A stretch of 64,000 nucleotides of DNA. It comes from Guillardia theta CCMP2712. Lineage: Eukaryota > Protista > Cryptophyta. Below the pieces are notes generated by a model. The model saw only the letters and a program-made list of their open reading frames with translations. It did no database searches and was not told the DNA's origin. This document shows positions 8,758-38,464 of the stretch, piece by piece (position 1 is the first letter of the stretch; each line of letters starts with the position of its first letter). The stretch lies in assembly GCF_000315625.1 (NCBI RefSeq), contig NW_005434668.1:366938-430937 (forward strand), read 5' to 3'. The position numbers and the translations under genes are program-made.

Positions 8758-10473
8758 TCATGGGCGATAGACTTTCATCGTGTGAGGAGGGGTAGACTTC
8801 ACGTTGCAGACAGGGCATCTGTCGATGACGCCTTGCTCGAGCAGCAACGAACAAACTTCACAGATCGCCAGGTGACCGCAGGGCACAATCACATGCGACA
8901 GCACATTCTCCATGCAGATCACGCACTCGTCCTCTCCTTTGTCGCTCCTTGCATCCATAGCTACCCCTCCACCCGCGGCACTGTGCCCTGCTGCCTTGCT
9001 CTCAGCCATGTCCTGCGGTAGTTGTATCGCTCCTCCTGCCGCATCCCTTTCTCCTCCTCCGACCTCACTTCTTCCTCCTCCTGCAACTCCTGCACAGATC
9101 TCATCATCACCGCTGGGGCTTATCACATCTTTCTGCTCGAGAGGGGCAAGAGGAGAGCACTCATCGTCGAAGGAGGAAGTCAGCCAGGAGCGCATGGCAA
9201 GCGGAGGATGCTGGAAGCCTGCGAACTTTGTCTTGGTTCTCAGCATTCCAGGAAGACGTGGAGCCCTGTCAGAGTCGAGGATCGTACGGCCAGCCGCCGC
9301 TTCCCTGAACCCGCTTTCTCTGGAGCTCTCAAGCAGCTCGTCCACACCATGACGAGGTCTAGTCAGCTCTGAGGAGGGGGAGAGCGATCCAGCAGGAGGA
9401 TCGTAGCCTTGAGCGAGTTGCCGGACGCCAAGACTAGCAATGTCGTCGAGAGCAGCAGCCATGGCAGGGGCCGTACTTCCCTCCTCCTGCCCGTCCTCCC
9501 CTCCCTCCTTGCCCGTGCGATTGAAAGTCAAGGGATCGCTCCAGGAGCTGAACTTGGCTCTGCTCCCGTACCTGATTCTCACGCTTACCTCCAGTCTCGC
9601 GCAGACAGCATGCAGCGGCAGAGGCTGCACAGAGCAGACAAGGTCCCCGTGCACCGTCAGGATGGGATAGCAGTGCTCGTTCACCCTCAGCTGGGAGTGT
9701 GTTGGGAAAAGCGAGGAGGAGGATGCATGGAAGCACTTGTTCTCAGGGTCCACCAGGAACGTCACTGTCAAGAGCTTCGCCGACATCTCCACCACCCTAA
9801 CCCCCCTCGGCTTCGGGCACCTGCACCTCAACCCTCTCGAGTCCTGGGACTGCTCCTGCTCCATCTCAGCGAGGAGGTGGCGTGCCTGGTAGTCAGCAGC
9901 GTCTTCGAGCTTCTCCTCCTCCTCCTTCATGTCTCTCAGCGCTGAGCGCGTAATCTCGTGGGAAGGGTCCAGACGCAGGGCAGCCGCGAAAAGCTCCTCG
10001 GCCTTTCTGATGTCACGATCCTTCCTCCACAGCAGGCAGGCATAGTTGTGGAGGGAGAGGACATGCGTCGGGCAGAGCCGCAGGGCCCTCTTCAACACTT
10101 GCTCGGCCTTGGTGAAATCATTCTGTTTGCACAGCAGATGTCCGTAGTTGCTGAGGACTCCCAGGTCGCGCGAGTTCTTGGTGAAAGCTCTCTCCATGCA
10201 GCAGCACGCCTCCTCCAATCGCCCCTCATCATCGAGCAGGATCGACAGGTTCGTCAGGCATTCGACATTGTCCGGCTGGATCTCAAGGCTCTTGCGGTAG
10301 AAACTCTCTGCTGACTGCAACTTCCCCATCCTGTGGAGGACCGTCGCCAGCCCGAAGAGAGAGCGCGAGTCCCTCGGGTTCTCCTGGGTAGCTCGCTGAA
10401 ACAGCCTGAAGCTCTGCAGCAGAGCAGCGTCTCGCTTCTTTGCTTCTTGCGCTGCATTCGTTTCTTCTGACAT
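8758..10473 (-). CDS. TPR-repeat protein with a central FN3-like domain and a C-terminal C3HC4 RING (putative E3 ligase)
   Basis: About 4 TPR units (SLFGLATVLHRMGKLQSAESFYRKSLEIQPDN...). C-terminal CVICMEN...VIVPCGHLAICEVC...CPVC is an IAP/MGRN1-like RING. Single 571-aa ORF. Confidence 0.85.
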   Translation of the reverse strand: MSEETNAAQEAKKRDAALLQSFRLFQRATQENPRDSRSLFGLATVLHRMGKLQSAESFYRKSLEIQPDNVECLTNLSILLDDEGRLEEACCCMERAFTKNSRDLGVLSNYGHLLCKQNDFTKAEQVLKRALRLCPTHVLSLHNYACLLWRKDRDIRKAEELFAAALRLDPSHEITRSALRDMKEEEEKLEDAADYQARHLLAEMEQEQSQDSRGLRCRCPKPRGVRVVEMSAKLLTVTFLVDPENKCFHASSSSLFPTHSQLRVNEHCYPILTVHGDLVCSVQPLPLHAVCARLEVSVRIRYGSRAKFSSWSDPLTFNRTGKEGGEDGQEEGSTAPAMAAALDDIASLGVRQLAQGYDPPAGSLSPSSELTRPRHGVDELLESSRESGFREAAAGRTILDSDRAPRLPGMLRTKTKFAGFQHPPLAMRSWLTSSFDDECSPLAPLEQKDVISPSGDDEICAGVAGGGRSEVGGGERDAAGGAIQLPQDMAESKAAGHSAAGGGVAMDARSDKGEDECVICMENVLSHVIVPCGHLAICEVCSLLLEQGVIDRCPVCNVKSTPPHTMKVYRP

Positions 10474-10521
10474 GCGTCAAGGAGCAACCGGAGTCAAGAC
10501 ATGCCCTCCTTCACATGGTAT

Positions 10522-11176: not shown

Positions 11177-11918
11177 ATGAAGGGAAGGCTATCTCTTCTG
11201 CTCCTCCTCGTCTGCCTCTCGTCAGCTGCGGCTGGTAGAAGCAAACTTCTTGGAAGAAACGGCATAGTCGGTTACATCTACTACACCCCCGATGGCACCG
11301 GTCGGCATTGCCCCTCCTCTACCCCACTCCCTTGTTCACGATGGTTGCATGCAGTGCCTTACAGCCAGGAGAGCTTCGACAGAAAGTTCGACAACGACGA
11401 GGACGCGATCTCTGAGATGTGAGGGGAAGGAGACGTGGTCAGTTCGAGGTGCTTACCTCCCTCCTTTCAGCTCCCACGACGTTGACCATCTACGTGCTGC
11501 GGACGCATACCTAGAGTCCATGTTCGCAAGGCGAGGACCGCGCGGGCCTCCTGGTCGTCCTGGACCTCCAGGTTGACCTCGAAGATCTCGGATGACTTCT
11601 GTCCCGTGATCTTCTTTCTCTTCTCTCCTCTCCTCTCCTCCCCGCCTACTTCCTCCGCTTCCTCCTCCACCTCTTCTCGGTCTTCTCCTCCTTTCTCTCC
11701 TCTTCCTCTGCCTCTTCTCTCTCATCGTCATCTTGTCCTTCACTTTCTTACTGACGTCGTTGGCATCAGGACCCCAGGGCTACAACGCAGTGCCGGACGG
11801 GGAGGGTGAACCCGGTCCTCCTGGCCTGCAGGGTCCTCCAGGAGGAGAAGGAAGCCAACAACTAAAGGAGCGGGTGAGGAGGAGAGAGAGCAGGAGGAGT
11901 AGTAGCAGGAGAAGGAGA

Positions 11919-11969
<51 letters not shown>

Positions 11970-12157
11970 GCGAATTTCGCGTTTACTCTACTGTACAGGT
12001 ACTGACAACGAGGGAGAAGGCAGAGGCGCTGAGGTCGAGGATCGACCATGCCAGCGTCATCAGGAAGCGGCTCAAGACGTTCATAGCCGGAAGGAGAGGA
12101 GGGGGAGGGAGAAGTGGAGGAGGAGGAGGAGGAGGAGGAGGAGGAGGAGATGCTTAG
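11177..12157 (+). CDS. small secreted collagen-like (Gly-X-Y) protein, 5 exons
   Basis: Signal peptide MKGRLSLLLLLVCLSSAAA. Four phase-compatible GT-AG introns give GPRGPPGRPGPPGPQG...GEPGPPGLQGPPG, then a helical tail VLTTREKAEALRSRID... and poly-Gly to TAG 12155-12157. Confidence 0.65.
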
Positions 12158-15100
12158 GATTCTTCGTACTGATCCGGCGCTTGTCCGAGGCTGGCGATGG
12201 TGCGGGGGATCGCTATCTCGTACTCCTTTCGTCTTCGGATTTCCAGCAGGTCCACCCGGATGTACCAGGGCCCTCCCTGCCGGAGCTCCAAGACAATGCA
12301 GGAGCGCGTTCGGTCGAAGAGGTGGCAGATGAGCGTCGTAGCGAGGCTGGCTGGGCCCTTGTGGGGGGTACGCAGGGGGTAGGCGAGGTTGACTTGCTGG
12401 GTGTCGAGCTGCAATGAAGATTGGGTGTGAGAAAATTTCGAGGGGGGGAGGAGAGAGGAGGAGAGAGAAGGAGAGAGGAACAGGAGGGGGAGGAAACTAT
12501 TTTACCGTCACGTCGTCAGTCTGCACCTCCTCCTGTGGGGGTTCGTTCGCAGAGGACCACTGCCATCAAGTTCAGTCGCTCGTCCTCCTGCGACTCCTCT
12601 CCCACCTTGAGATCCTCCAGCTCCTCCTCTGACATAAGACACCCAGGGATCCTCCGATAGTTGATAACCTTGAGGTGCTTGTTCAAGTCCTGCACGTCTG
12701 CTCAGTCTCCCTCACCCTCGCATGCTCTTCGCTTCCTCGACTCATGCAGTAGAGGGGCTTACCTTGGCTTGCTGTCCCGACACATGGATCAGCATGTCAA
12801 ACTCATCCTCCAACTTGGAGGGATCGATGGCGAAGTCCTTTAGGTCATCTCGACGGCTTGCCGCGATCTGGTAGCTCTCCAGCTTGCCTTTCTTTTCTTC
12901 AATGCACAGCGTCGCAGCTGAAGCTCCTGCTCCGACGGTCATCAGAGATGGGGAGGACGAGCATGTGCGACTACCAGGGCAGCCCTTGAGATTCTTCCGT
13001 CGATAGAAGGTGAAGTCGTCGTCGAAGTCGAAGTCGAATGCGTGCCTGCGAGAGGGCGGGTCAAGTGAAACTCAGCGAGGTCGGCAGGGTCGCACGTGAT
13101 GATCAGCGCAAACTCGTAAATCCCCGCAGACTCATGCACTGCAATGTCACGGAAGAGCTCCCGGTTGAGGTACGACGGCACTTCCACCATGCGCGCAGCA
13201 CCTTCACTTCCTCCCTCGACTTCCAGGAGGCGGAGGCGAAAGACGTAGACAGGGCGGTCCTGGCTGAAGGAGTCCGAGGCGTAGACCTGGAAGGAGGGGC
13301 TCTTGATCTTGTGCAGGTCTTCCAGCGCAGGATCACAATCGATTTTCTTCAACCTCGCCTCCTTCTTCTCCTGGCGCAGCATCTGAATGCTCTTGGTTGA
13401 GACCTTCTTGTAAAGCCTCTGGACTACAGCAGCAGCCTCCGCTGCATTGCGAGTTCAGGGTCTTCACAACAAGAGCCTCTGAGCGTCCTGCCTCCCCTCC
13501 CCTCCCCTCCCCTCCCGTCCCTCCCCAGACACACTCACACCCCACGTCTCCTCCTGCATACCGTGTGAGTAGGGACCCCTGGCGAGGTAGTCATCTCGCG
13601 CATCTGCCAGGATAGACCCGAGGTGCATCCCCGGCTGTCGTCCACGTGTCAGGGTAGCAGGGGCGTCAGGTGGGAAAGACCTGGATCCCGGTGATCTGCA
13701 TCACGTCGTAGCCGTTGAGAGGCCACTTGAGCGCGGCGACTCGATCTTCTTGCACGATCTTTCTAACGTTGCTCAGCATGACATGAGCCCGGTCGATGTG
13801 CTCCACCTGATTCTCTGAATTACTTTGGGGGGAAGAGGACAGGACAGGACAAGAAAGAACAGGAGGAAACGGAAGGAGAAGAAGCGTTTAGGAGTCTGGG
13901 AAATCGATGCATTTTGGGAGGAGGGAAACATTGGAAACCGCAAAGATAGATGAGAGGCCGCGGCCTTGAGATCCTTACCTGTCGCTTCACACTGAGGGTT
14001 GTGCAATCAGCCAGGTAGAGGTCAAGGAAGTCGTCGAAGAGAGGTCCCTGAAGCACTCTGTGTAAGGAGGGGAGGGAGCGGAGGGAACAAGTACAAGGGC
14101 AGAGTAGAGTCTCCTCGCAGCGTTGGCATTGATCTTCTCGACCTGGCGGATCCTCCCCGACCGAGCCACCAGCGTCGCAACCTGCCCACCCCATCAGCAT
14201 CTCCTCGCAGCAGGTCAAGACCCTCCGCTGACCTCCTTGCGAAAGTCTGGGGGGTACCCGTAGCCCGCCAGGATCTCGTCCACCATCAGCGCGCCGACGT
14301 ACTCGTGATCGCGAAACTGCAGCTTCTCTTCCGAGGGATCCACTGAGACCTGTCACGGTCGTGAGCAGCTACATCGGGCTGGCGTCAGCAGAGACCGTCC
14401 TGGGCTTCCCGATATCATGGAGCAGGGCGGCCCACCGCACTCGGAGGCGGCAGGGAGACTGCTTCACCACCTTGTTGCTGCCAGTCAGCAACAATGGGAG
14501 GAGGAAGGAGGGCAGCAGCCGCCATTACCTGGAACACGTGGTTGATGAGCACCTTGGACCGCAAGAGGAAGTCGATCTGCAGGACAGAGTCGTCAATAGA
14601 CAACAACAGCTGGACAACGGGCGGCACTCACTTGTTCATCCTCCGCCTTGTCAGAGAAAGGATCGCAATACTTGATCCGGATCATCTGCTCCAACCAATC
14701 CAGGTGCGGGTGGACAAACTCGCCGTCTGGTCCCACTTGCAAACTTGCCCGAGCAATCTCGCGAAGCTCTCTTGTCGGGTTGACTGATTTCAAAACCGCA
14801 TCCCAGAACTTGGTATTCTGGACAACAACATCTGTCACACGAAAGCGGCAGACAACGGCAACCAGTAACTTACAAAGGTGGTATTCTCGTCTACTTTGAA
14901 CTTGGACGCTTGTGAAGATCTGCCCCTGAATTCCCTCGGCTTTTGATGATGACCGTTAGACTCTGGCCACAACCAGCCCTGGAAGGGAATCATCCGAGAA
15001 TTGTCTGTCGCCCTCGCTTGCGCCTGATCCAACACGTACTTCAACTGCTTGTCGGTGTATTTTGACTTGTCGATTCCTGAAAACGCCCTGTCGAGGTTAA

Positions 15101-15440
15101 TCTTTCTTTGCACGGGGGTCCGCGGGGGCTGCGCTGAGCTCGCATCCGCCTTCACCCGTTGCTTTTCGAGCGGAACCTCATCATCATCGTCATTGCCATC
15201 GACCAGGTTGTGACTCTGCACGAAAGACTGTGTGCCCCTGCTGTTTCTGATCCCTTGCGCCTTGTTGTTTTTCGGAGCCTCGCGGTCGATTGGCGTGCTT
15301 GGCCTGGAAGTCTCTGCTGCCTTCTCGGGTTTGAGCGATTTTCCGCTCAAGTCTGTTGGGAAGCTGTTCAAGCATCGAGCCTGATTCAATGAGGATCCCA
15401 GAGCTCTCTTTATGAGCCAGCCGGTTCGCGCAAGCTTCAT
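12154..15440 (-). CDS. HD-domain protein matching the C-terminal (HD + tail) half of bacterial CCA tRNA nucleotidyltransferases, with a transit-like N-terminus and an unknown C-terminal extension; many exons
   Basis: Spliced translation: LINHVFQVV...RVRWAALLHDIGKPRT (HDIGKP at 14402-14419)...FRDHEYVGALMVDEILAGYGYP...ARRLYSALGPLFDDFLDLYLADCTT...WPLNGYDVMQITGIQPGMHLG...RGPYSHAEAAAVV. All junctions used in this HD/tail segment are GT-AG. Confidence 0.8.
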
Positions 15441-15644
15441 AGTCTCCTAGCTAACTCACATCGAACACTTGTGACAACAACGGCAACTGCTCGTAGGTTC
15501 CTAGACAGACGGTAGGTGACCTTGGATGGCAGAACTTAAGTGAAGAAGGCAATGGGATCGGAGCCTTATCTCTCTCCTGTTCTGCTTCTCACGTCATGCC
15601 CCAATGCCTGCACGAGCCTTGCACTGCATCATGGAAGCCAATAC

Positions 15645-16100
15645 CCGTGAGGGTATCCGTGAGGGTATCCGTGAGGGTATCCGTGAGTCAGTCGAGGACT
15701 GCCGGGAGCCGGCGGCCCCGCCGGGTCACCGTCACGCTGCCGTGACCGTACCCTGAGTACGGTGCACGGTCTCACCCGCCGGGCCGGTCGGCCCCGCCGG
15801 ACCGAACCGTTGATCTGCCATCAGTGATGATCGGACCGGTGATCGGACCGGACGATCCGGGCGGCGTCCTCAATTCTCAGTGGGCGGCGGTTTTGTGTGC
15901 ATTAAACTCGGTCTTGAGCAAAAACTGTCTTGTTACCAACTAAGGTCGAGGCCGGCCGCCGAACATGACGTGACTCCGACTCCGCGAGTGACCGTCGGGT
16001 GACACCGTGGCTCAGCGGCCGCCCCCGGCCCGGCTTGCGGGCCGCGCGCGGCGGCTCGGGGCGCGCCCGCGGCCGGACGCCGATACCGTTCACCGGCCCT
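15645..16100. repeat. CpG-rich palindromic-word patch, starting with a 12-bp tandem repeat (ccgtgagggtat x~3.5)
   Basis: Words atgatcggaccgg (twice), ccgggccgg, tcagtgggc, gagtca and ccgtac are shared with the other patches. Confidence 0.65.
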
Positions 16101-17094: not shown

Positions 17095-20000
17095 TCACCC
17101 AACTATCTGTACAGAGTAACCAGCTCGAGTGTTGAGCCGGGAGAGATAGCCGCGCACACTCTCCGTCACCGACCTGCCCTACAGTCACAACGGAACGCGT
17201 AGAGTATTGAAATGTTCCACCTTGCCTTGACCTTCATAGATTTCACGAACCTCACGAACTGATCACTCGCCTTCCCAATCTTGTCGCTCTGATTGAATTT
17301 CTGCGAGCGGGAGCTGCGTCAGGCAGGGAGGGCAAGGCTGGTGCTCACCATGCTGAAGATTGAGGTGGCCTGGGGATATGGCCCCGCCTCCAGGTCCTGA
17401 GTGGTGGCTCGGGACTTCTCGTACGGCAGCGCTCGTGACAGCGGGAACTGATCGCTGAAGCCGCCTGCTCAAGTATGACGGCAACAAGGTCAGGAGGAGC
17501 AGGCGCACCTTGCGGCAGAAGTTTCTTCATGTCCTGCCATTTGCCGGCGACGTTGGAGAGGGTCTTGTTAGCAGCTTCGAAGGTAGTCTTCTTCTTCACG
17601 GCGCTACCACTCCGACGTTGAGTGTTGGCAAGGTTTGATATCCTCTCATATCGCCTCCTCTCTTCTCCGATTAAGATGATCGCCTCCTTCTCCTGCTCCT
17701 CCGTGAAGGATTTGCTCTCGCCGTCGAGGATCGCAAAAAGCTCGAATCTCTTGCCGAAAACCTGACATGGCATGTCAGACATTTTTCTGTCTGCCTGCGA
17801 TTGTACCTGACGAGATATGATGAAAAATAGATTGAGAATGAAGAATCCAAGCATGATCGGCGGCAAAACCTCATCGAAACTGGAGCCAACAAAAGGAACT
17901 CTTCCCATAGCCGAGAAGGTCTTTTCGAAGACTGTCGCCTCGCCTCCAACTTCTCGTTCTTCATGAGCTTCACGCAGCATGTTCAGGTAGTTCTGTGTGA
18001 TGGAGGGGACTATGCGGCAAGCCAGGAAGGCGTTGACGAGTAGACTGTGCGAATCTGTTTCTCCGGGAATCACCTCGTAGAGCTGGAGGGCAGGAAAGTG
18101 AGAGAGGGAGCAATCGTTGAACGGCACTACCTTCCATAGCCTCAGCCTCGTCAGCGAGAAATGACAAATCCTCATAAAGTACAACAGGTGGCAAATGATG
18201 ATCACTTGGACCGAGGGCTCGATCGAGAAAGGATCTTGAGGAGTTGGAGTGGAGTCGGAGGAGCGGCAGCCTGAACCAACGATCAGAGGAAGGGAGAGGG
18301 AGAGGGGGAAGGGAGAGGGAGAGGGAGAGGGGGAAGGGAGAAGATACTCGCATGCTAGTCACTTACTTGGTGGCAACTTCGATGCCCAGCAAACTTGGTG
18401 GAGCAAGAGAGATCCCTGCTGCGGTTCCGAGAAATAATCTCGAATCCATGGGGCAACAGATAGCTCGCTCCACAGCATGCATATAGACAAAAACCCACAG
18501 AGAAGCGAAGAAACTACTTTGACGAACCTGACAACAAACATGTTGTTCAAGAACCACAAAACTTCCAGCCGCCTCGCCCATCTCCCTTGAAAGCTCTTCT
18601 TCACAGGCGATTCCACGCCCCTCCACGCATCCTCCTCTTCCTTCTCTAAGAAAGCATTCCAAAGAGTATGTTGCATCGCTTTCCACGGGAGAAGCGCTTG
18701 ATAAGTTGCGACGACATCTTCTAACAGTATTGCGCTCACAACAGCAAGATCAAATTTTCTTTTTGCGCGACGGTATCGCTTATTCAAGTGGTGCAATTCA
18801 GTCTTGAAGGCAACGAGCCTTTCAGTACTCCATGCAGCTGTCTGGTTCAGATTCGTTTCTTGACTCTCCGTCTCCATGAAATCGTCCTCGTCAAACCTCT
18901 TGTCCATCTCTATCTTAGCGTCGTTTCTCTTCACAATGGCCTCAGCCAGCATCTGCAGGACTTCACCCTCTAGCTCTAGCAAGGGCGCTAAAGATTTCTT
19001 GATGATAGCGATCCTGTCTTCACCTGCAGCCTCTTCCGTGTTCTTGCGCATCCTGGCAATGTCCAAATAGTCCACATCAGCGAGCACTCGGAACTTGGCG
19101 TCATACAGAGTGTCCTGCAGCGACAGGATGTCTGTGCCAAAAGGCAATAGGTTTGCAGAGGACAGCGATTCAATCCACAGGTCGATCTCAGTCATGGCCT
19201 GCCCGTAAGTCCTCTCGCGCTCAACCTGCTCTAGCAGCAGCAAGAACGCCGCCTCCTTGTCCTCCTCTGTGACGGGGAACGACGGGCCGTACACGGGGTC
19301 CATCTTCAGCGCATCCGCCACATCGATAGGAGACTCGTCGATGATCTTGAGGATGGCTGGAGCAAGGTTTCGCAGGGAGGTAGAGGCCAGCCTCCGCAGG
19401 TTGTACAGCACCGTGAGCTTCTTGGCCAGGAGCCTCGCCACTCTGTTGAACTTCACATACTGCAGGAAGGCATCAGAGCGGAAGCGCTTCAGGCTCGGGT
19501 TGATCCGCGCCTCCTGCCACAGGCTGATGGGAAACTCAGCCAGCCCGTAGCCCAGCAAAAGGGCAACCACCATCAGCATGAGCGAGTTACCAACTCCCAT
19601 TAGACCCTGGAAGATGTACCTCCAGTTCTCCCCCGAGATGACAAGGATGACGAACAGCGCAGAGAGAATCGCTGCCACCGTCATGAAGAAGCATCCTTGG
19701 TTGTAGACCGCCTGCCGGGCCCGCAGGAGGAGCGAGAAGTGTTGGGCCTCCACAAAGTGCTGCTGCGTTGTGAGCAGGATCCACCCGTTGAATGCACAGC
19801 CCGTGTACACCGCAGACCACAGGAACTTCAACACGTCGGTCGAGATTCTCAGCGAATCTTCGTCACTGATGTCGGGGTAGAGCAGCTTCCATGACATGAA
19901 GTAACCTGTGTCGCATTCGCGCAGGTCATCCTGGGACACCTGGAGGTTCATACATCGCTGGACGTACACAAGATGTACATCTATGGGCACCAGCGCAACA

Positions 20001-20137
20001 AGGGACAGGACGAGGAAGTAAGAACCCCAAACGCTTGTCATCACATGCCATGGAACTCGATGGGAGGCCAGGCGATTGAGAGCAATCCAGCAAAGGATGC
20101 CAATCAAGACAAATTCGAGAGCTAGCGCCCACCACAT
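17095..20137 (-). CDS. LMBR1-family multi-pass membrane protein (LMBRD2-like)
   Basis: N-terminal TMs with LVALVPIDV, FLWSAVY, and ALLLGYGLAEFPISLW. Long cytoplasmic loop, then LSICMLWSE and SLLVNAFLACRIVPSITQNYLNM...TVFEKTFSAMGRVPFVGSSF. The 3' exon end is approximate. Confidence 0.85.
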
Positions 20138-29305: not shown

Positions 29306-32300
29306 ATGGCTTCGATCCGCAAGCGCGATGGTGGCAGCATGTGGCAAGAGAGCTTGCTCGACCGCAATGCTGAGGTGAAGACGCCGGCAGAAAGTTGCGA
29401 TGCAGGTAAAAGTCTTGTAGTTCACGCCGAGTCTTGAGGAGGGTTGATCCCTTTTGACAGTGGGCGTGGGGATATCGCTATCGCGCCAGAGCTCTTGGTT
29501 GGATTGTTATCCTCAGATCTCTCGAGTGTTTTCAGGAGGGTCAGCACAGATGGATGGAAGAATCAGGCAAGGAGATTGGCTGATCAGAGTCGATGGACGC
29601 GATGTGAAATACCTGCCGCTTAACCACATCAAAGAAGCAATCCTAGGGAGAAGTGGGACCAGCGTGCAACTGGAGCTGGAGAGCGATGGAACCAAGTTTA
29701 TTGTTCAACTTACAAGGCGACAAAACAATGATCGGACAGAACACAAACTGAATGTATCTTACTTGGTTTGATGGTGGCATTCTCCTTGACCACATTCTCA
29801 GGAACAAAACGACATGCTTAATACAAGGGAGGACAACGAGAAATTGAAAGCAAGTCTCCTCAAAATTGAAAATGAGAATTTGACATTGGCAAAACGATTG
29901 GAGGCAAAAACGATGTATGCGATATCATGAGATTGACATGCTTTCAGGAAGCCACACATATGAACGACTTGTTTGAGGTGGAAAAGAAGCAACTCAAATT
30001 TACTCAAGATGAATTACAAGGATCTCTGAAGAACTTACTCGAGAAGAATATCCGATTAGAATCTGAATGTAAGGATGTCAAAGAACGTTTAGCAGCACTT
30101 CAATTTGAAAACACGGTGAGACAGTGGACGATTGTTGGTTTGATATCTAATGACAACTTCAAAAACCAAGGCTCTGGACAATCAAAATGAAGAATCACAG
30201 CAAGAACTCATTGTTGCAAGACAGAAATTGATTCATTCCAATATGGTGAGATCATTTTTGGATCTTGTTCGTTCTAATGTGTGAAAATATTAGCAACTGG
30301 AAGCTGTCAACAATGCGTTGGCAACAGCAGAATCAGAGAAAAAGAAGCTTGAAGAGGAAATACAGACTGTGCAGACTCGTTGCATGGATTTGGAAAGACA
30401 ATTGGAAGGCTACCGGCAAGCCAATGAAAGAAATGAAAGTTTGGTAGGATGCGCGCTTCTCCTGCTGGTTCTTACTGTTGCTCCAGTTTGATTCAACCCA
30501 GAAACATCACAATCTAGAAATGCAGGAGATGGAGAATGAAGTGAAAAGATGTCGAGATGAAGTTCAATCCTTCCAAGCAGAAAGGGCTTCGATGCTGGAT
30601 GAACGATCAGAGCTACGTAAGAGTATTGTTGCATTGGAGCAGGCCTTTCTGGTACCTCATCTGAATTCCATGTGTTTGATTCTTTAACGCATTTCAGGTT
30701 AATGAGCCTTCACATGTTTTCAAACGTTCGAATGAGTCAATTAAGCTTGTTGATCGGTTGAATCATTTCGTAGAGAATCTTCATCAGAGATATGAACGTG
30801 AAATGTCGCGTCAGGAAAAGGAGAAGAATGAGCGGGTCAATCATTTAGAAAAAGAGAACGTTGAATTCAGACTGATATTCGAAACATTTAAAGCTCGACT
30901 TGAAGAAGAAGTTCAAGAAATATTTGAGTGCAGAGACAAAATTATTCCATCAATATCCATGGAAATGCAATCGGATATTGAGGATCTCCTTCTACAAAAT
31001 TCACGTTTACTGGATCGAGTCGGAAGTTTGGAAGCATACACAAAACAGACTAGTGCGCTGACAGCTACACTTCAGGAACTTGTACATGAAATTTCTGACT
31101 GTACCAATACATTTGAAAAATCCTTACACGAAATTCAATTTTCTTTTGAGAAAATCGATAAATTCTTACAAAACTTCTACTGTTGTCAAAAGGAGTGTCA
31201 AAATCTCAAAAAGGAGAAATTATCACAACAAGAATACATCAATCAACTCAAAATATTGATTGAAATTCATAAAGATGAGAACGAGCAACAAAAAGGAGAA
31301 TTGCAGAATTTGTTCAGTATGTATGCGGACGTTCTACAAAGATATCAGAAAGTTGAAGATGACCACAATTCCTTACAGTCGGTTTTGATGGTTGCACGAA
31401 AGAAAGCAAATGAAAACTTGAGCGATCTGCTCGATGTCAGATTGATCTCACAGGATCTTGCAGAATTTCAATCCATGACTGAAGAAACTATTCAAAGACT
31501 TGCAGATAAGAACACAAAATTTCATGTTTTTATCAAGGAAACGAAAGACTGTGAGGATTCAATGAATGTCATGTTCACAACGCTTGAAAATCTCATAATT
31601 ACAGTCGAAACAAAACTTGCAGACTGTCTAGAGGGGACAGAACAGTTGTTTCTCAGGAGAAATTCGTTTGAGCACCAGGTCAACACATTGAACGATAGGG
31701 TACTGAGTCTACAGACAGCGAATGAGATTCAGACCATTGAGAATGCTGTCAATGTGGAAAAACTCCAAGACTTCAATTCAACAATTCTTCAATTACAAGA
31801 AAACTTGATGCAAGAGCAAGGTGCTGTAGAGCAGTTAACGTCAGAATGCAACGATTTGAGAATATTTTACCAAGAAGCGGAGCTGAAGGCATCCAAACTC
31901 AATGCTGACAATCAAAATCTGTTGCAAGAGAGGGAAGCCATGACATTGGCCGTATCTAGTTTAACCATGACGATGAATGAATTCAGATTGCAGTCATCAA
32001 TGTATGAAAGCTACATTGATCATCTCTTCAAGGTGACGTGTGCCCTTGAATCGCAAACAGATCTTTTTGGCAGTAACTTCGTCTCACTTTGGAAGTCAAA
32101 GTGTGAGAATGATAACAGGTTAAAAATGCTTGAGTCTGAGATAGACTCTTCAATGATGAAGCTTCACGCTACTGAGGATCAGCAACAAGCAGCAGAATTG
32201 GCGATTCAGCATCAAAATGAAATCTTGTTTTCGCTACAGGAAAAATACCAAGAACTCGAAAATCGACATACTCAGATTTTGAAGGAGCTTGAGAGTGAAA

Positions 32301-35300
32301 GGAACAAATCTGAAAGAATGAAAGAGAAACTCCAAGTGTCACAAGAAAAAATGACAAAAGATGCCAAGGAGATATCAACTTTACAAGCTCTTGAGACTGC
32401 ACTCAAAGACAGGGTTCGAATGTTAGAATCATCAGCAACAGAGTTAAAGCGAACCAGGCAAGAGATTCGGTCTTCGCATATCAGGCTCGGAGCATATGAG
32501 GAATCAATAACAATCTCACAAGACGAGATGAGCTACTTGAGATCTTGCAACCAGAACCTTACTGACGGTCTGCAACGAATCTCGCGAGAAAATCAAGAAT
32601 TGAAGGCTGAGAACTCTGAATTGCAAAAACACTACAGAGAACTGTTCACAGCTGCTGATGAGCTGCAAAGTTGGATGCAGATCATAGACAAGAAACAATC
32701 GAGCGCGACGCTGACAAAGTATGCAATGGAGCGAAGTATCCTCGAAAAAGATCTCCTGAGAATGACCCACGAACTGAGAGATTTAACAGTCTCAGACCTC
32801 CGACACGGCGATTTGAAACTGACCAGAGAAGCTGCTCATTCGTCTTATTATGAGTCCAATGTGAGCGCAGTTGAATCGATTCAGGAAGCAGCAGAAAGAA
32901 TCAAGAGCTACGATAGCCGTCTACAGGAAAATAGCGAGACGATAAGAATGCTGGAAGGCCAAAACAGTCAACTCAACCTTCATCTAAACGCTACTTTAGA
33001 TGAAATGAACAATATTGGAAGAATGAATGAATCAATCGTCACTGGAATTGAACAATCTTTGCAACAGTCGAGACTATTTTGCAACTGTAAACTGATCAAA
33101 TTTGAAGAAACGAAATCAATTCTCTTCTATCTGAGCTCTCAATTGAACTCTATTGCAGCACAGGTGGGAGAGTTTTACCATCGACTGAGAGAGCTCTTGG
33201 AGATAAACGAGTCTACGAATCAAGAGATGGAAGGAAGAATCAAGAGTGTAGAGCATGAGCTGTCGACAGAGCGATCAGAATGTCAGGCGCTGAAGCTCAA
33301 GGTACAGGCGCTTGCAGACGAGCTATCACATCTTGCCGACGGCCAGGGAGCTGCTGTCCTTGAGCTCGAGACAACGATGGTAAACTTGCACAGCTCGGCT
33401 CGCAATACTGCACTCGAAATGGAAGGAAGAATCAAGGGTGTAGAGCATGAGCTGTCGACAGAGCGATCAGAATGTCAGGCGCTGAAGCTCAAGGTACAGG
33501 CGCTTGAAGACGAGCTATCACATCTTGCCGACGGCCAGGGAGCTGCTGTCCTTGAGCTCGAGACAACGATGGTAAACTTGCACAGCTCGGCTCGCAATAC
33601 TGCACTCGAAATGGAAGGAAGAATCAAGGGTGTAGAGCATGAGCTGTCGACAGAGCGATCAGAATGTCAGGCGCTGAAGCTCAAGGTACAGGCGCTTGCA
33701 GACGAGCTATCACATCTTGCCGACGGCCAGGGAGCTGCTGTCCTTGGGCTCGAGACAACGATGGTAAACTTGCACAGCTCGGCTCGCAATACTGCACTCG
33801 AAATGGAAGGAAGAATCAAGGGTGTAGAGCATGAGCTGTCGACAGAGCGATCAGAATGTCAGGCGCTGAAGCTCAAGGTACAGGCGCTTGAAGACGAGCT
33901 ATCACATCTTGCCGACGGCCAGGGAGCTGCTGTCCTTGGGCTCGAGACAACGCTCACACGTGCGTGCCTTTTAGTGAATGAAGCCCTGGGGAACTTGGCG
34001 GATGACAAGGAAAATCGTGAAGTGATGGGGAAGTCCTTCAAGACGCTCAGCGCTGAGATCCAAGCACGAGATGACGTCATTCGGGAGCTCCAAGACAAGA
34101 ACTCAAGTCTTGACAATGAAGTAAAACGACTGCGATCCCTAGCACCCAGCAGGGAAATCGTTGAGGATCCGATTCCAATGAGCAGGCCCTTGGAGACAGA
34201 GCCGAGCAAGAAGATCGAACAGATGATTCTTCAGATTCACTGGATGCTACAAAATGAGGAAGACACTGATTATTATCAAGGATTCCAGGACATGGATACT
34301 GTAGAAATTCTCGGAAATATCCTCCATTGGCTTGAAATGACTTTTTTGGGAAAGAGACAAGATATAAGACTGGGGAGTGAGTTTGGCAGTGAGGTGAATG
34401 TTGCTCTTTGCAAGATTGAGCTACAGCTCTATAACATCGAACAAAGTCTTCACCTAAATCGAGATCAACTAGAATCGATGTTGCTCTATTGGACTCAACG
34501 ACTTCACTTTGCCAAGTCTTCAAGTGACAAGAAGTACAACCTCTCTTGTTTGTTGACTGACTGCTTTGTCAACATGGCAACCATTTCGAAAGGAAATCAT
34601 GTTGATGAGCAGTATGCTTCTCAGGAATTTACCACCGCAAGCAATGTTTTGTCCACATCCATTGATTTACTAGAATCATCCTTGCAGAAAATCGCAGCAC
34701 ACTGGTACAAAGTGAACGAGCCTGCTCCTCGAAGCAAAGCAGTTGCTCTATCCATCAGCCACCATCAGAATTCGAATGAACATTCTCATGCTGAGGATAT
34801 TGGGTATGCAATGATACAAAAGTACGAAGACTTGATCCAGTCTTGTGACAAGCGAGTGGCACAGATAGACAGTGTCCTGGCGCCCTGCCTAGAGATTCTT
34901 GACCGAAATGACGACAGCTTGAAGACATTTGAGTTGCATCTGAATCAATGCCAGCAGCTTTGCAAAACCTTAGATCAAACGATTACCTCGACCAATTCAA
35001 TTTGCACTTCAGACATTCTTGAGTTGTCAAGAGGATACAACAAGCTTGAAGTCTTGGTTTCAGGCTTGACAGATGTCATCCCAGAGATTGAGCGTGAAGT
35101 TGCAAGGGAGAGGAAGACAATAGATTCCTTTCGTCAGCAGACAGTTTACCTCCCTCAGTTGCAGAAGACCAACGAACGCCTTGAACAGGCAGTAGCTGAT
35201 TATCAGATCGCCGAGGAACTGCTTGGAATGAAAATCTTCACATTGGAAAAGAAGGCAGCAGATGATAACAAGGAGATAGAATACCTCAGAAGCATCATCT

Positions 35301-38300
35301 TGGAAATGAATCAACGATTGCGTATTGTAGAGGAGGAGTCGAAGCAGGCGTTGCTGAACGAAAGGTGCATCGCATCAAGGATTCAACAAGAGATATGCGA
35401 GGGGCTGAGGGCGATGTCAAGTGAGATGAAGTCAATCTTGAAAGAGATGTTCTCACAGAAGAGTGCTTGTGGTGACTTGTTCGAGGACTATCATGTATAC
35501 GTAGAAAAGTTCTTTGAGTCAGCCACCAAAATACAACTTCTTTCAGCTACTCTGGAGGAAATGAAATCGTACTACTCTGCCCTGTCGCAGAAACATCACG
35601 ATTTGCAGGAAATCGCTTCTCAACGGCAGGCAATGTGTGACGGTGAGGCGCAAACGCCTTTGGAATTCTCGGACGAGGAATTCTTTGAGAGGCTGCAAGA
35701 CTTTGATGCCTCTTGTACTCGCGCTCTGACAGAGATTGAATGGAGCTTGAATGAGATGAAGTTGAAATCCACTCATCTTGAAGCTCCCGTTGAGAATGAT
35801 GAGAACGATGTGTCCTACAGCCTGATCGAAACAGAGTTGATCAGCAAAGAGCGGATAATAGAGGGCATGCATGAGCAATTGCAATCTCTGCACGGCAGCT
35901 GTATGGTGCTCGCGAATGAAAGAGGAATTCTCGAAGAGAAGTTGAAACTACTGGAGGATGAGAATGAAGCGTTGCTTGGAGAAATCAAAATCTTGACCCG
36001 CGGCCAAGAGTATTTCAGACATGATCTGTCGATGTCAGCGGAAAAGCTCCAACAACGCGAACAGGAGATTCATTTGATTCAAGACTTGGAACGTGACATT
36101 GCTGTGCTGCAAGACATGGTAGAGGGATCAGTGAGCCGGATCGATTCAGACGTTGACATGGCCTTGCGACTAGTACGAGCGAATGCTCGAGAGCAGAATG
36201 GTTTGATACAATCCTGCACATCCAAACTGGAGAACGTGAAAGACAGAATGAGGTGGAGCGAGAAGGAGCTACACGCTCAGCACGAGCAAGTTCGATGCTT
36301 CATCCATGAATTGTTGGACGTAATGGAGACAGTCTCTGACGTTTGCCATGAAAGCGAAACTTACTTGGTTACACTCGAACAGTTGAAGAACTCCCGCTCG
36401 CAGGCATCGAACTTAGCGGAAACTGTTTCACTGCTTCAATCAGATGCGTTAGCAAAAGAAAAATACATCAACCATCTTGAGCAACAGATCCAGATCTTGC
36501 ATCAATCTGTGATTGATCAGAAGGTGGATACTGACGTTGCACACCAGCATTTCGAATCAAAGCAGACCGAGATCGAAGTCTTGCGCGATGATTGCCGACA
36601 GCAACGTGAAACCGTGATTCAGCTGCGGCTGGAGAAGGAGGCTGCCATTGCCATGCTGCTCGAGACGCATAGCGCGATCCTCGACTTCGACTTTCCTCTG
36701 AACGCCCTTGAGACCTGCATGCAGACCCTCGCGCCCTCTGCGTCTGACTGCAAACTTAACTCATGGCCACAGCAAGCAAACGAGAGGTACCGACAGCTCG
36801 TCGCTTGTCTTGCCCAGGAGCTCGACCAAACCTCTGACGGCCTGGAGCTTGTCTTCAGACACGTTGAGAATACTTTGATGGAGCTTCAGCGTGAACAGTC
36901 AAGATCTTTGACGCTCTCTGAATGTGTTCGAGAGCTGGAGGCTGCCTTGCAGGAGAAAGGCGATGTGATTGATATGCAGGCTAAGGAGATTGACAAGTTG
37001 AACAGTAAGAATGAGATGATCCTCAAAGAAATTGCGGGCTTGAGATCACAGCTTCAAGACAATGACAACAATTACAACCAGAACTTTGCGAATATGAAGA
37101 CCCAGATTTACAAGTATGAAGCCATGCATTTGGACGACGTTCAAAAGCTGAATCATAGTATTGAAAGGATCAACATCCTACAAGAGAAGTTGGCATTTGT
37201 AAGCAGAGAATCTGAGAGCAAGGCTACGAATGTCAGGAACATGGACTCTGTGCTTGCCTCCAAGGCGAGGTCCTTCCTCGATCAGCTTCAAGTGCTTGAA
37301 CGAACATTGATCAAGGCACAAGGAAGTGTCAAGGTCATGGTTGACTCTGAGCTGCAGTCGGGCATCGTGCTGGAGGCTCTCTGCAAGGCATCATCGGATG
37401 TCGATCATGTCACAACGTCATGCCAAGAGCGCGTGGAGGAGATGCTGGTGATATGCCTCCATGACCCGCAAAGCTTCTACGACTCAATGGATGAAATCCT
37501 CGTGCGGCTTGACGGCTGCCTGTCCAAGGCAGTTGCTGAGGCTCACGCGAGGAGCTCGACAGACCTCGCACGGGTCAAGACCTTGGAAGCTCTACTGTCA
37601 AGCAGCGAGCAGGAGCTGCGAGATCTGCACCTGCGGCACGAGGAGGCGCGGCTGTTCATGGCCAACGTGCAGCAAGATGTCCGGGAGGCGGAGGAGAGCA
37701 GAATCAAGAAGGACCACCTGATACGGATCCTCGAGGCCGAGTTGTGCTCTCTCCAGTCCGAGCTTGAGAGCACGTGCAAGGAGCGAGACTCGCTGCTGCA
37801 GCTGAAGGAGCAGCTGCAGGGCCAGCTGACTGACAAGGATAGGGAGACCGAGGCGACAAGTGCAGCGCTGGAAGAAGAGAAGAGGGTTAGAGTCACGCTT
37901 GAGGAGTACTGTCGAGCCTTCACTCTCACTGGGGATCAGCTGACTAGGCTCGAAGGCTCCTCAGCAGCCGTCCAACAAGTAGTGGAGCAACTTCTGCAGG
38001 GAGCCTCGAGGGCCCGCGAGCAGCAGGAGGAGCTCGTCAAGGCGCGGCTCCAGCTCTCCTCCAAGACGCAGGTCGTCACCCTCATGGAGCTCGAGCTTAG
38101 TTCTCAGCTCACACGGCTCGACCAACAGCAGGAGGTCATCAGGCACCTTGAGAGTCAGGACAGGCTGCACAGAGTTCAGCTAGAGAGCAGCTGGCGCGAG
38201 GCAATGGAGGTCGGCAGGAGGCTCGAGGCGGCGGAGGAGATGCTGGTGCCTCTGCTCAAGTCTCTGCTGGACGGGATCGCTCGAACAACGTCATCATGCT

Positions 38301-38464
38301 CCGCTCTCCGGCTAAGGGTGAAGGAGCTGGAGTTCGAGTACAAGGAGGAGCAGGTGCTGACCTCCACCCTGCAGAGGCAGGTCGAGGCCCTTCACGACCT
38401 TGTCCTTCACCACCAGGGCCTGTCGATGATGACAGAAGGAAGCAGCATCTCCCACAAGACATGA
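29306..38464 (+). CDS. giant coiled-coil protein with an N-terminal PDZ domain
   Basis: ATG 29306; exon 2 gives VGVGISL...ISRVFSGGSAQMDGRIRQGDWLIRVDGRDV...IKEAILGRSGTSVQLEL (PDZ). Several short exons follow, then a 2568-codon heptad-rich open frame. The 3' end could have extra exons. Confidence 0.8.
33227..33952 (+). repeat. 192-bp (64-aa) in-frame coding tandem repeat, ~3.8 near-identical copies
   Basis: Units start (ATGGAAGGAAGAATC) at 33227, 33419, 33611 and 33803. Confidence 0.95.

Follow-up and report, generated by a model that had tools for sequence, protein, structure and literature searches.

The closest described counterparts of the gene examined here are the bacterial class-II CCA-adding enzymes. 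In members of the family TIGR02692, such as Rv3907c of Mycobacterium tuberculosis, a nucleotidyltransferase (NTase) head (PolyA_pol, PF01743) and a neck (PF12627) are combined with an HDIG-type HD domain that contains the motifs RWAALLHDIGKP, F.HHE.VGA.M, AARR and ADCTT, and with a tail of the form P.L.G.[ED][IV]M..G..PG..[LV]G. The HD domain of the multifunctional CCA protein of Escherichia coli (NF008137) belongs to the same family, and in this protein repair and CCA addition are coupled within a single chain. The phosphatase activity of the M. tuberculosis enzyme was abolished by the substitution H298A in the HD domain (PMC10673834), while 2'-nucleotidase and phosphatase activities are attributed to the HD domain of the E. 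coli enzyme in a passage of PMC10673834 that cites Yakunin 2004. Here we describe a gene on the minus strand of a 64-kb stretch of contig NW_005434668.1 from the cryptophyte Guillardia theta CCMP2712, the predicted product of which resembles the rear half of these enzymes. The whole stretch is referred to as the window, all positions are those of the window, and the exons are named E1 to E12.

The algal protein contains the HD and tail motifs of the TIGR02692 enzymes in the same order. It differs from them in that the PF01743 head and the PF12627 neck are absent, an N-terminus that is long, disordered, and presequence-like at its start has been added together with a rear domain, three conserved histidines are replaced, and the predicted gene is nuclear and interrupted by 11 introns. 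Another system in which a related module works without an NTase head is the beta subunit of the (alpha-beta)2 glycyl-tRNA synthetase (GlyRS) of bacteria and plastids, which contains an HD module that is partly similar to the body of the class-II CCA enzymes. The GlyRS module lies inside a synthetase and has lost the HD dyad, whereas the dyad is intact in the algal protein; in E. coli GlyRS the dyad has been changed to Ser/Lys, and the domain, modelled near the transfer RNA (tRNA) acceptor arm, has been proposed to bind tRNA (PMC8464048). The glyS models matched none of the exon pieces at an expectation value (E) of 1 or less.

The gene was modelled as 12 open pieces that extend on the minus strand from position 15440 to approximately 12519 and are joined via 11 introns of 46 to 166 bases, mostly shorter than 60, with GT..AG at every border, in line with the earlier description of the gene as colonized by introns. 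The pieces probably represent one nuclear cryptophyte gene of about 12 exons and 720 codons. Its product would then, by our preferred model, consist of four parts: a basic leader of 29 residues, a disorder-type region of about 160 residues, the rear half of a CCA enzyme of about 285 residues, and a rear domain of about 245 residues.

The HD domain and tail

The string of HD and tail motifs that was quoted in a first-pass annotation of the window was found complete and in order when the exons of the minus strand were joined. It starts at the junction between E3 (14529..14576, 16 codons, IDFLLRSKVLINHVFQ) and E4 (14396..14470, 25 codons), which reads INHVFQ followed by VVKQSPCRLRVRWAALLHDIGKPRT. 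The first of these exons provides the first metal-binding histidine of the HD domain, aligned to the invariant H97, and the second provides the HD dyad within an HDIG-type motif. The sequence FRDHEYVGALM is located in E5 (14233..14349, 39 codons, ..LQFRDHEYVGALMVDEIL..) and corresponds to the F..H..G..M block that is conserved in the family. The invariant RR pair is retained in E6 (14095..14181, 29 codons, VATLVARSGRIRQVEKINANAARRLYSAL), which joins E7 (13979..14047, 23 codons, GPLFDDFLDLYLADCTTLSVKRQ) to give AARRLYSAL followed by GPLFDDFLDLYLADCTT, and the final aspartate of the HD domain is found in the ADCTT motif of E7, identical to that in the actinobacterial CCA enzymes. The tail motif is divided between E8 (13681..13812, 44 codons, or 42 with the acceptor at 13806), which encodes the first half (..QEDR..PLNGYDVMQITGIQ), and E9 (13562..13634, 24 codons and 1 base), which encodes the second half (PGMHLGSILADARDDYLARGPYSH) and retains P260, G265, and L276. 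Joined, PLNGYDVMQITGIQ/PGMHLGS..ARGPYSH/AEAAAVV spans E8 to E10.

A 51-residue piece containing E4 was matched by the Pfam HD model with 22.4 bits (cut-off 22, E 1.6e-4), and the same piece, which covers a single exon alone, obtained 24.5 bits with TIGR00277 (HDIG), below the cut-off of 27.6. The NCBIfam model TIGR02692 (tRNA_CCA_actino) matched E4 at profile positions 278 to 299, and the top PDB matches for this exon were the entries 3wfo to 3wfs, deposited as 'Poly A polymerase'. The similarity to the E. coli family NF008137 was far weaker, with 13 bits on E4.

To extend the comparison to the other exons, we used a profile of 48 C-terminal halves taken from 52 bacterial loci carrying the sequence ALLHDIGK. 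The profile searches of the window covered 2266 six-frame pieces, from which pieces overlapping positions 12443-12480 were excluded. The three highest-ranking of all pieces were E4 (E 2e-10), E5 (5e-4), and E8 (0.013). Among the pieces of the gene itself, the best five were E4, E5, E8, E6, and E7, which aligned to profile positions 97-129, 132-164, 214-259, 163-192, and 195-219, respectively, and with E9 as the last piece, E4 to E9 tile positions 97-280 in a colinear manner and without gaps. The 48-sequence alignment has 19 invariant columns, of which 18 are retained, including H..HD..H..D and ADCTT; the remaining one is L201, which is a phenylalanine in the algal protein. Colinear tblastn matches that included ADCTT were also obtained to the CCA enzymes of Mycolicibacterium and Streptomyces. 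The predicted tail helix AEAAAVVQRLYKK in E10 had no significant match to the 48-sequence profile. Judged from these alignments, E4 to E9 are homologous to the rear half of the bacterial class-II CCA-adding enzymes, with its HD phosphohydrolase domain and its C-terminal tail. The TIGR02692 match, the colinear tblastn matches, and the tiling of E4 to E9 on the profile all agree with the earlier assignment of this region to the actinobacterial type.

The ligands retained are the histidine of INHVFQ in E3, the HD of LLHDIGK in E4, the histidine of DHE in E5, and the aspartate of ADCTT in E7. The predicted protein thus possesses the H...HD...D ligand set of the HD and HDIG phosphohydrolases (PF01966, TIGR00277). 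The first-pass annotation had listed the first histidine, the HD pair, the HE, and the final aspartate as retained, and this is correct. Three further histidines that are conserved in the family are replaced, however, so that the activity of the protein is uncertain.

Upstream exons and the C-terminal rear domain

E1 (14874..15440, 189 codons) starts with an ATG at position 15440, with an in-frame stop codon three codons upstream. After the basic, acid-free residues 1-29, the remainder is mainly of the disorder type, with one conserved block at approximately residues 113-160. E2 (14632..14817, 62 codons) encodes a helical segment directly before the HD domain. It is aligned to the bacterial helix 'ELnKIl.s..P..G' at the place expected in front of the HD domain, although with an E value of just 0.075 in hhalign, and is possibly a remnant of the 'ERIxxEL..P..G' body helix of the CCA enzymes. 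The CCA-enzyme homology probably starts at this exon.

No Pfam or NCBIfam model, those of the PF01743 head and the PF12627 neck included, matched E1 or E2, and the motifs G[SG]..DxD and RRD were not found in these exons, whereas all of the full-length bacterial comparators showed the PF12627 neck. Furthermore, a head and neck profile built from 29 full-length bacterial enzymes gave no match in the 2266 six-frame pieces from both strands (the best E value was 0.78, on the other strand and far away). An AlphaFold model of the corresponding region of the Hanusia phi protein P0002 (residues 1-216) consisted of disorder and a few helices, with no sheet, and had a predicted local distance difference test (pLDDT) value of 48; only the E2 helices reached values of 66 to 73. 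The searches and the low-confidence, sheet-free model both bear out the earlier claim that no NTase head is located upstream of the HD domain. By its predicted sequence, the protein has the HD domain and tail of a class-II CCA-adding enzyme and neither its head nor its neck.

The basic, acid-free N-terminal peptide MKLARTGWLIKRALGSSLNQARCLNSF was present as quoted in the annotation. The first 29 residues contain five K/R and no D/E, with a hydrophobic moment of 0.48, and the maximum Kyte-Doolittle mean over 12 residues is 0.5. No hydrophobic core of a signal peptide was detected in the hydropathy profile of the N-terminus, which speaks against entry into the complex plastid by the signal-peptide route with a bipartite leader. 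The N-terminus resembles a mitochondrial presequence, and the earlier suggestion of such a presequence fits with both its composition and the absence of a signal-peptide core.

At the other end, the gene is longer than first proposed. The annotation had placed its 3' limit at 13400, but E9 joins E10 and the frame continues to about position 12519. E10 (13096..13441) encodes the last CCA-type tail helix AEAAAVVQRLYKK, joined to GPYSH at the E9/E10 junction, and then, with no stop codon between them, an extra C-terminal domain (..PVYVFRLRLLEVEG..YEFALIIT). This domain continues through E11 (12763..13045, HAFDFDFDDDFTFYRRKN..IDPSKLEDEFDMLIHVSGQQAK), which may contain one further in-frame intron of 48 bases, and into the tentative E12 with the stop codon (approximately 12516..12695), an open frame with a CAG acceptor that is conserved in the contig L003 of a relative. 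From E10 to E12 the frame stays open for about 245 residues more. No homolog covers E12, and of all parts of the model this exon is the least certain.

We find it very likely that the HD part and the rear domain belong to one gene, because the corresponding Hanusia ORFs (open reading frames) share a transcript name, just 85 bases would separate two genes in the alternative model, and intron 9 carries an indel. In H. phi, the front part P0002 and the rear part P0008 are listed under a single transcript name as ORFs.1 and.4 (EukProt serials P033081 and P033084), E10 is 59% identical to P0008, and P0008 is spliced at the E10-E11 border exactly as predicted (IIS/HAFDFDFDDD), with intron 10 removed. 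Intron 9 carries a frame-breaking 2-base indel in a relative that is about 95% identical in DNA. Two adjacent genes are an unlikely alternative, in which the HD protein would stop at position 13467 (with the tail ..GEGRQDAQRLLL) and a second gene would start from the ATG at 13382 (MLRQEKKEARLKK..). ORF callers begin the rear part of the relatives at that methionine (P0007 and P0008), and the helix AEAAAVVQRLYKK was not significantly matched by the CCA profile, as two genes would predict. Against this stand the short distance of 85 bases from the stop codon to the next ATG, the frame that stays open over the 19 codons upstream of the methionine at 13382 and joins E9 via a GT..AG intron, the intron-like 2-base indel in the G-rich stretch between the two parts, and the common transcript name of the front and rear ORFs in Hanusia. 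With a frame that runs into a domain of about 245 residues and with both parts on a same-named transcript in Hanusia, the term 'stand-alone', previously used for the enzyme, is probably wrong.

The rear domain had no Pfam match at E values of 10 or lower and no PDB profile match, its AlphaFold model had a pLDDT of 42, and nothing below an E value of 0.08 was obtained in Foldseek. Two domain assignments made by a language model, CRAL_TRIO for the piece from the window (score 0.91) and PRiA4_ORF3 for the piece from Hanusia (score 0.92), conflict with each other and are leads for which no profile or fold match was obtained. A weak tblastn match between the rear domain and a plasmid was dismissed as noise, as it overlies an unrelated aminotransferase-like ORF in Burkholderia.

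Relatives and genomic neighborhood

The annotation had presented the loss of the head as a feature of this eukaryotic protein. It is not special to this eukaryote, and the headless form is not a eukaryotic invention, because the Polyangiales carry an abundant family of headless proteins of 307 residues. The two bacterial loci that were closest to E4 (L005 and L006, from Polyangiales-type metagenome-assembled genomes) encode proteins of 307 to 329 residues in which HD is the only Pfam domain and the TIGR02692 match is confined to profile positions of approximately 208-443. A word search with L005 gave 5604 matches, and the best 120 of the 5604 were all of 300 to 312 residues and contained HD only. 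Members of this family (L005, L006, P0009-P0128) are annotated as 'HDIG domain-containing metalloprotein', are about 307 residues long and are 82% to 99% identical. It was also noted that the JGI often labels the headless Polyangiales proteins as 'poly(A) polymerase' despite the absence of a polymerase domain. Among the gene neighbors of the bacterial headless genes we found no adjacent head gene and no functional hint, and we found no paper on headless CCA-type HD proteins, on the Polyangiales family, or on the algal gene.

The algal and Polyangiales proteins share the headless layout of a short helical lead, an HD domain, and a CCA-type tail, and L005 provided the best match to a single exon (E4, 69% identity, 45.8 bits). 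Unlike the algal protein, the Polyangiales proteins have neither the long N-terminus nor the rear domain, and they keep the three histidines. Furthermore, whereas E4 is closest to the Polyangiales family, E5, E7, and E8 match the full-length CCA enzymes of actinobacteria and others better, and summed over the exons the full-length actinobacterial enzymes outscore the Polyangiales family. It is not established that the two headless forms share a common descent, because E5, E7, and E8 favor the full-length enzymes.

The nearest eukaryotic relatives are proteins from H. phi in EukProt. E2 is 73% identical to P0002 and 92% identical to P0001, P0002 joins E1 to E2 as predicted, and E1 residues 45-189, approximately, align with P0002. 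The joined E1-E2 in P0002 and the removal of intron 10 in P0008 indicate that a partly spliced transcript exists in Hanusia. A search with E2 among 1.8 billion representative proteins recovered two fragments from cryptophytes and, apart from these, just P0005 as a possible relative, and no relatives of E2 were found in two metagenome scans at the JGI. No full-length eukaryotic ortholog was found in the representative search with E2, and the word searches covered 0.55 to 1.75 times the length of the query, a range that ends short of the model of about 720 residues. P0005 (also P0129) is a GC-rich gene call of 231 residues on a 4339-base contig of GCA_041442895.1, with a segment that is 44% identical to E2. 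At an E value of 6.6e-4 in 1.8 billion proteins, this segment and the cryptophyte sequences have 22 invariant positions in common, and P0005 is a possible relative in another organism.

To examine the constraint on the gene, we used the metagenome contigs L001-L004, which represent the relative that is about 95% identical in DNA. Frame-breaking indels of 1, 2, and 7 bases were confined to introns 3, 9, and 11, and the sole indel in an exon was of 3 bases. The divergence of the introns was 8.5%, equal to the proportion of synonymous differences (pS 0.085), and the ratio of nonsynonymous to synonymous divergence (dN/dS) was 0.48. The HD gene is thus under moderate purifying selection.

Upstream of the gene, at 15600-16100, a CpG-rich patch with many short GC palindromes was observed 200 to 650 bases from the ATG, inside which an 11-base unit is repeated in about 3.5 tandem copies (15646-15687); the patch may be promoter-associated. 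The upstream neighbor on the minus strand (17345-20137) consists of two long open frames of 286 and 592 codons with several hydrophobic stretches by eye, and is probably a gene for a multi-pass membrane protein; the NTase head profile did not match its ORFs. On the downstream side of the HD gene, the minus strand has an open frame of 325 codons with TPR-like repeats (9502-10476), and long low-complexity and microsatellite-like stretches on both strands (11780-12500) separate the end of the HD gene from the next gene. Farther away, the plus strand contains one stop-free frame of 2594 codons (30680-38461), a very long exon or gene.

Possible functions of the HD protein

We propose that the protein would be taken up into an organelle (the mitochondrion being the most likely), where the HD site would act as a metal-dependent phosphoesterase on the 3' ends of RNA or tRNA that carry a 2',3'-cyclic phosphate or a 3'-phosphate. 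The activity would be the repair activity that this domain has in the CCA enzymes of E. coli and M. tuberculosis, but separated from the addition of CCA, and the rear domain would supply a contact to a partner or ligand. Import and the healing of tRNA or RNA ends are inferred, and we judge them to be fairly probable. A more specific version is doubtful, namely that cryptophytes have turned an acquired bacterial HD/tail module into a free-standing organellar healer of tRNA 3' ends, with 2',3'-cyclic phosphodiesterase and 3'-phosphatase activities, which complements the HD-less eukaryotic CCA enzymes in trans and is tethered to a partner or membrane by the new rear domain.

Several observations weigh against our proposal. 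Serine stands in for H91 and H172, and arginine for H137 (L005 numbering), three histidines that are kept in 81% to 96% of the bacterial set. The family pattern H-K-D has become S-K-V in E3, according to a manual alignment to L005, FHgH has become FRDH in E5, and L-H-L-R has become R-S-G-R in E6, so that the HD site may be weakened or changed. The dN/dS value of 0.48 corresponds to a merely moderate constraint. The targeting was judged from composition alone, and the Hanusia ORF begins further in. The splice between exons 9 and 10 and the assignment of E12 rest on sequence logic. Finally, about half of the sampled words fell in runs guessed to be RNA, which fits with exons only and is no proof.

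The replaced histidines and the moderate dN/dS would also be expected of a catalytically weakened protein that binds RNA or tRNA and has kept the CCA-type HD domain, body, and tail as a scaffold for tRNA recognition, similar to the HD domain of GlyRS beta, for which the Ser/Lys dyad near the tRNA acceptor arm in E. coli (PMC8464048) sets a precedent. We consider this unlikely, as the canonical ligands H, HD, D, and the histidine of DHE as well as the entire AALLHDIGKP motif are intact and 18 of the 19 invariant columns are kept, whereas GlyRS beta has lost the HD dyad itself. A hydrolase of nucleotide signals, such as 2',3'-cyclic nucleotide monophosphates, cyclic dinucleotides, or alarmone-type substrates, with the rear domain as the ligand sensor, is a still less probable explanation. 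HD and HDIG domains hydrolyze many nucleotides, and the HD domain of the E. coli CCA protein also acts as a 2'-nucleotidase and phosphatase (Yakunin 2004, as cited in the passage of PMC10673834 mentioned above), but the algal protein has kept, in colinear order, the tail after the HD domain that is typical of the tRNA-binding CCA family, and no recognized nucleotide-binding domain was found in its rear part. It is very improbable that the gene is a decaying, functionless relic of a transferred bacterial CCA-enzyme gene. The loss of the head, the three histidine replacements, and the moderate constraint could be read in this way, but the 12 exons all have open frames and canonical splice sites, the indels avoid the exons, and the protein is 59% to 73% identical to its counterparts in H. 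phi, where a partly spliced transcript is present.

The general view is that the CCA-adding enzymes of eukaryotes have no HD repair domain, and to our knowledge little is known of how 2',3'-cyclic phosphate or 3'-phosphate ends are cleared from damaged tRNAs in organelles. If our proposal of an imported healer of RNA ends is true, the clearing of tRNA ends would have a direct candidate in a separately encoded and probably organelle-targeted HD/tail protein, and the two halves of the bacterial enzyme, repair and polymerase, would be able to function apart. The same question extends to the large, unstudied headless family of the Polyangiales, which would provide an easy bacterial system for the lone module.

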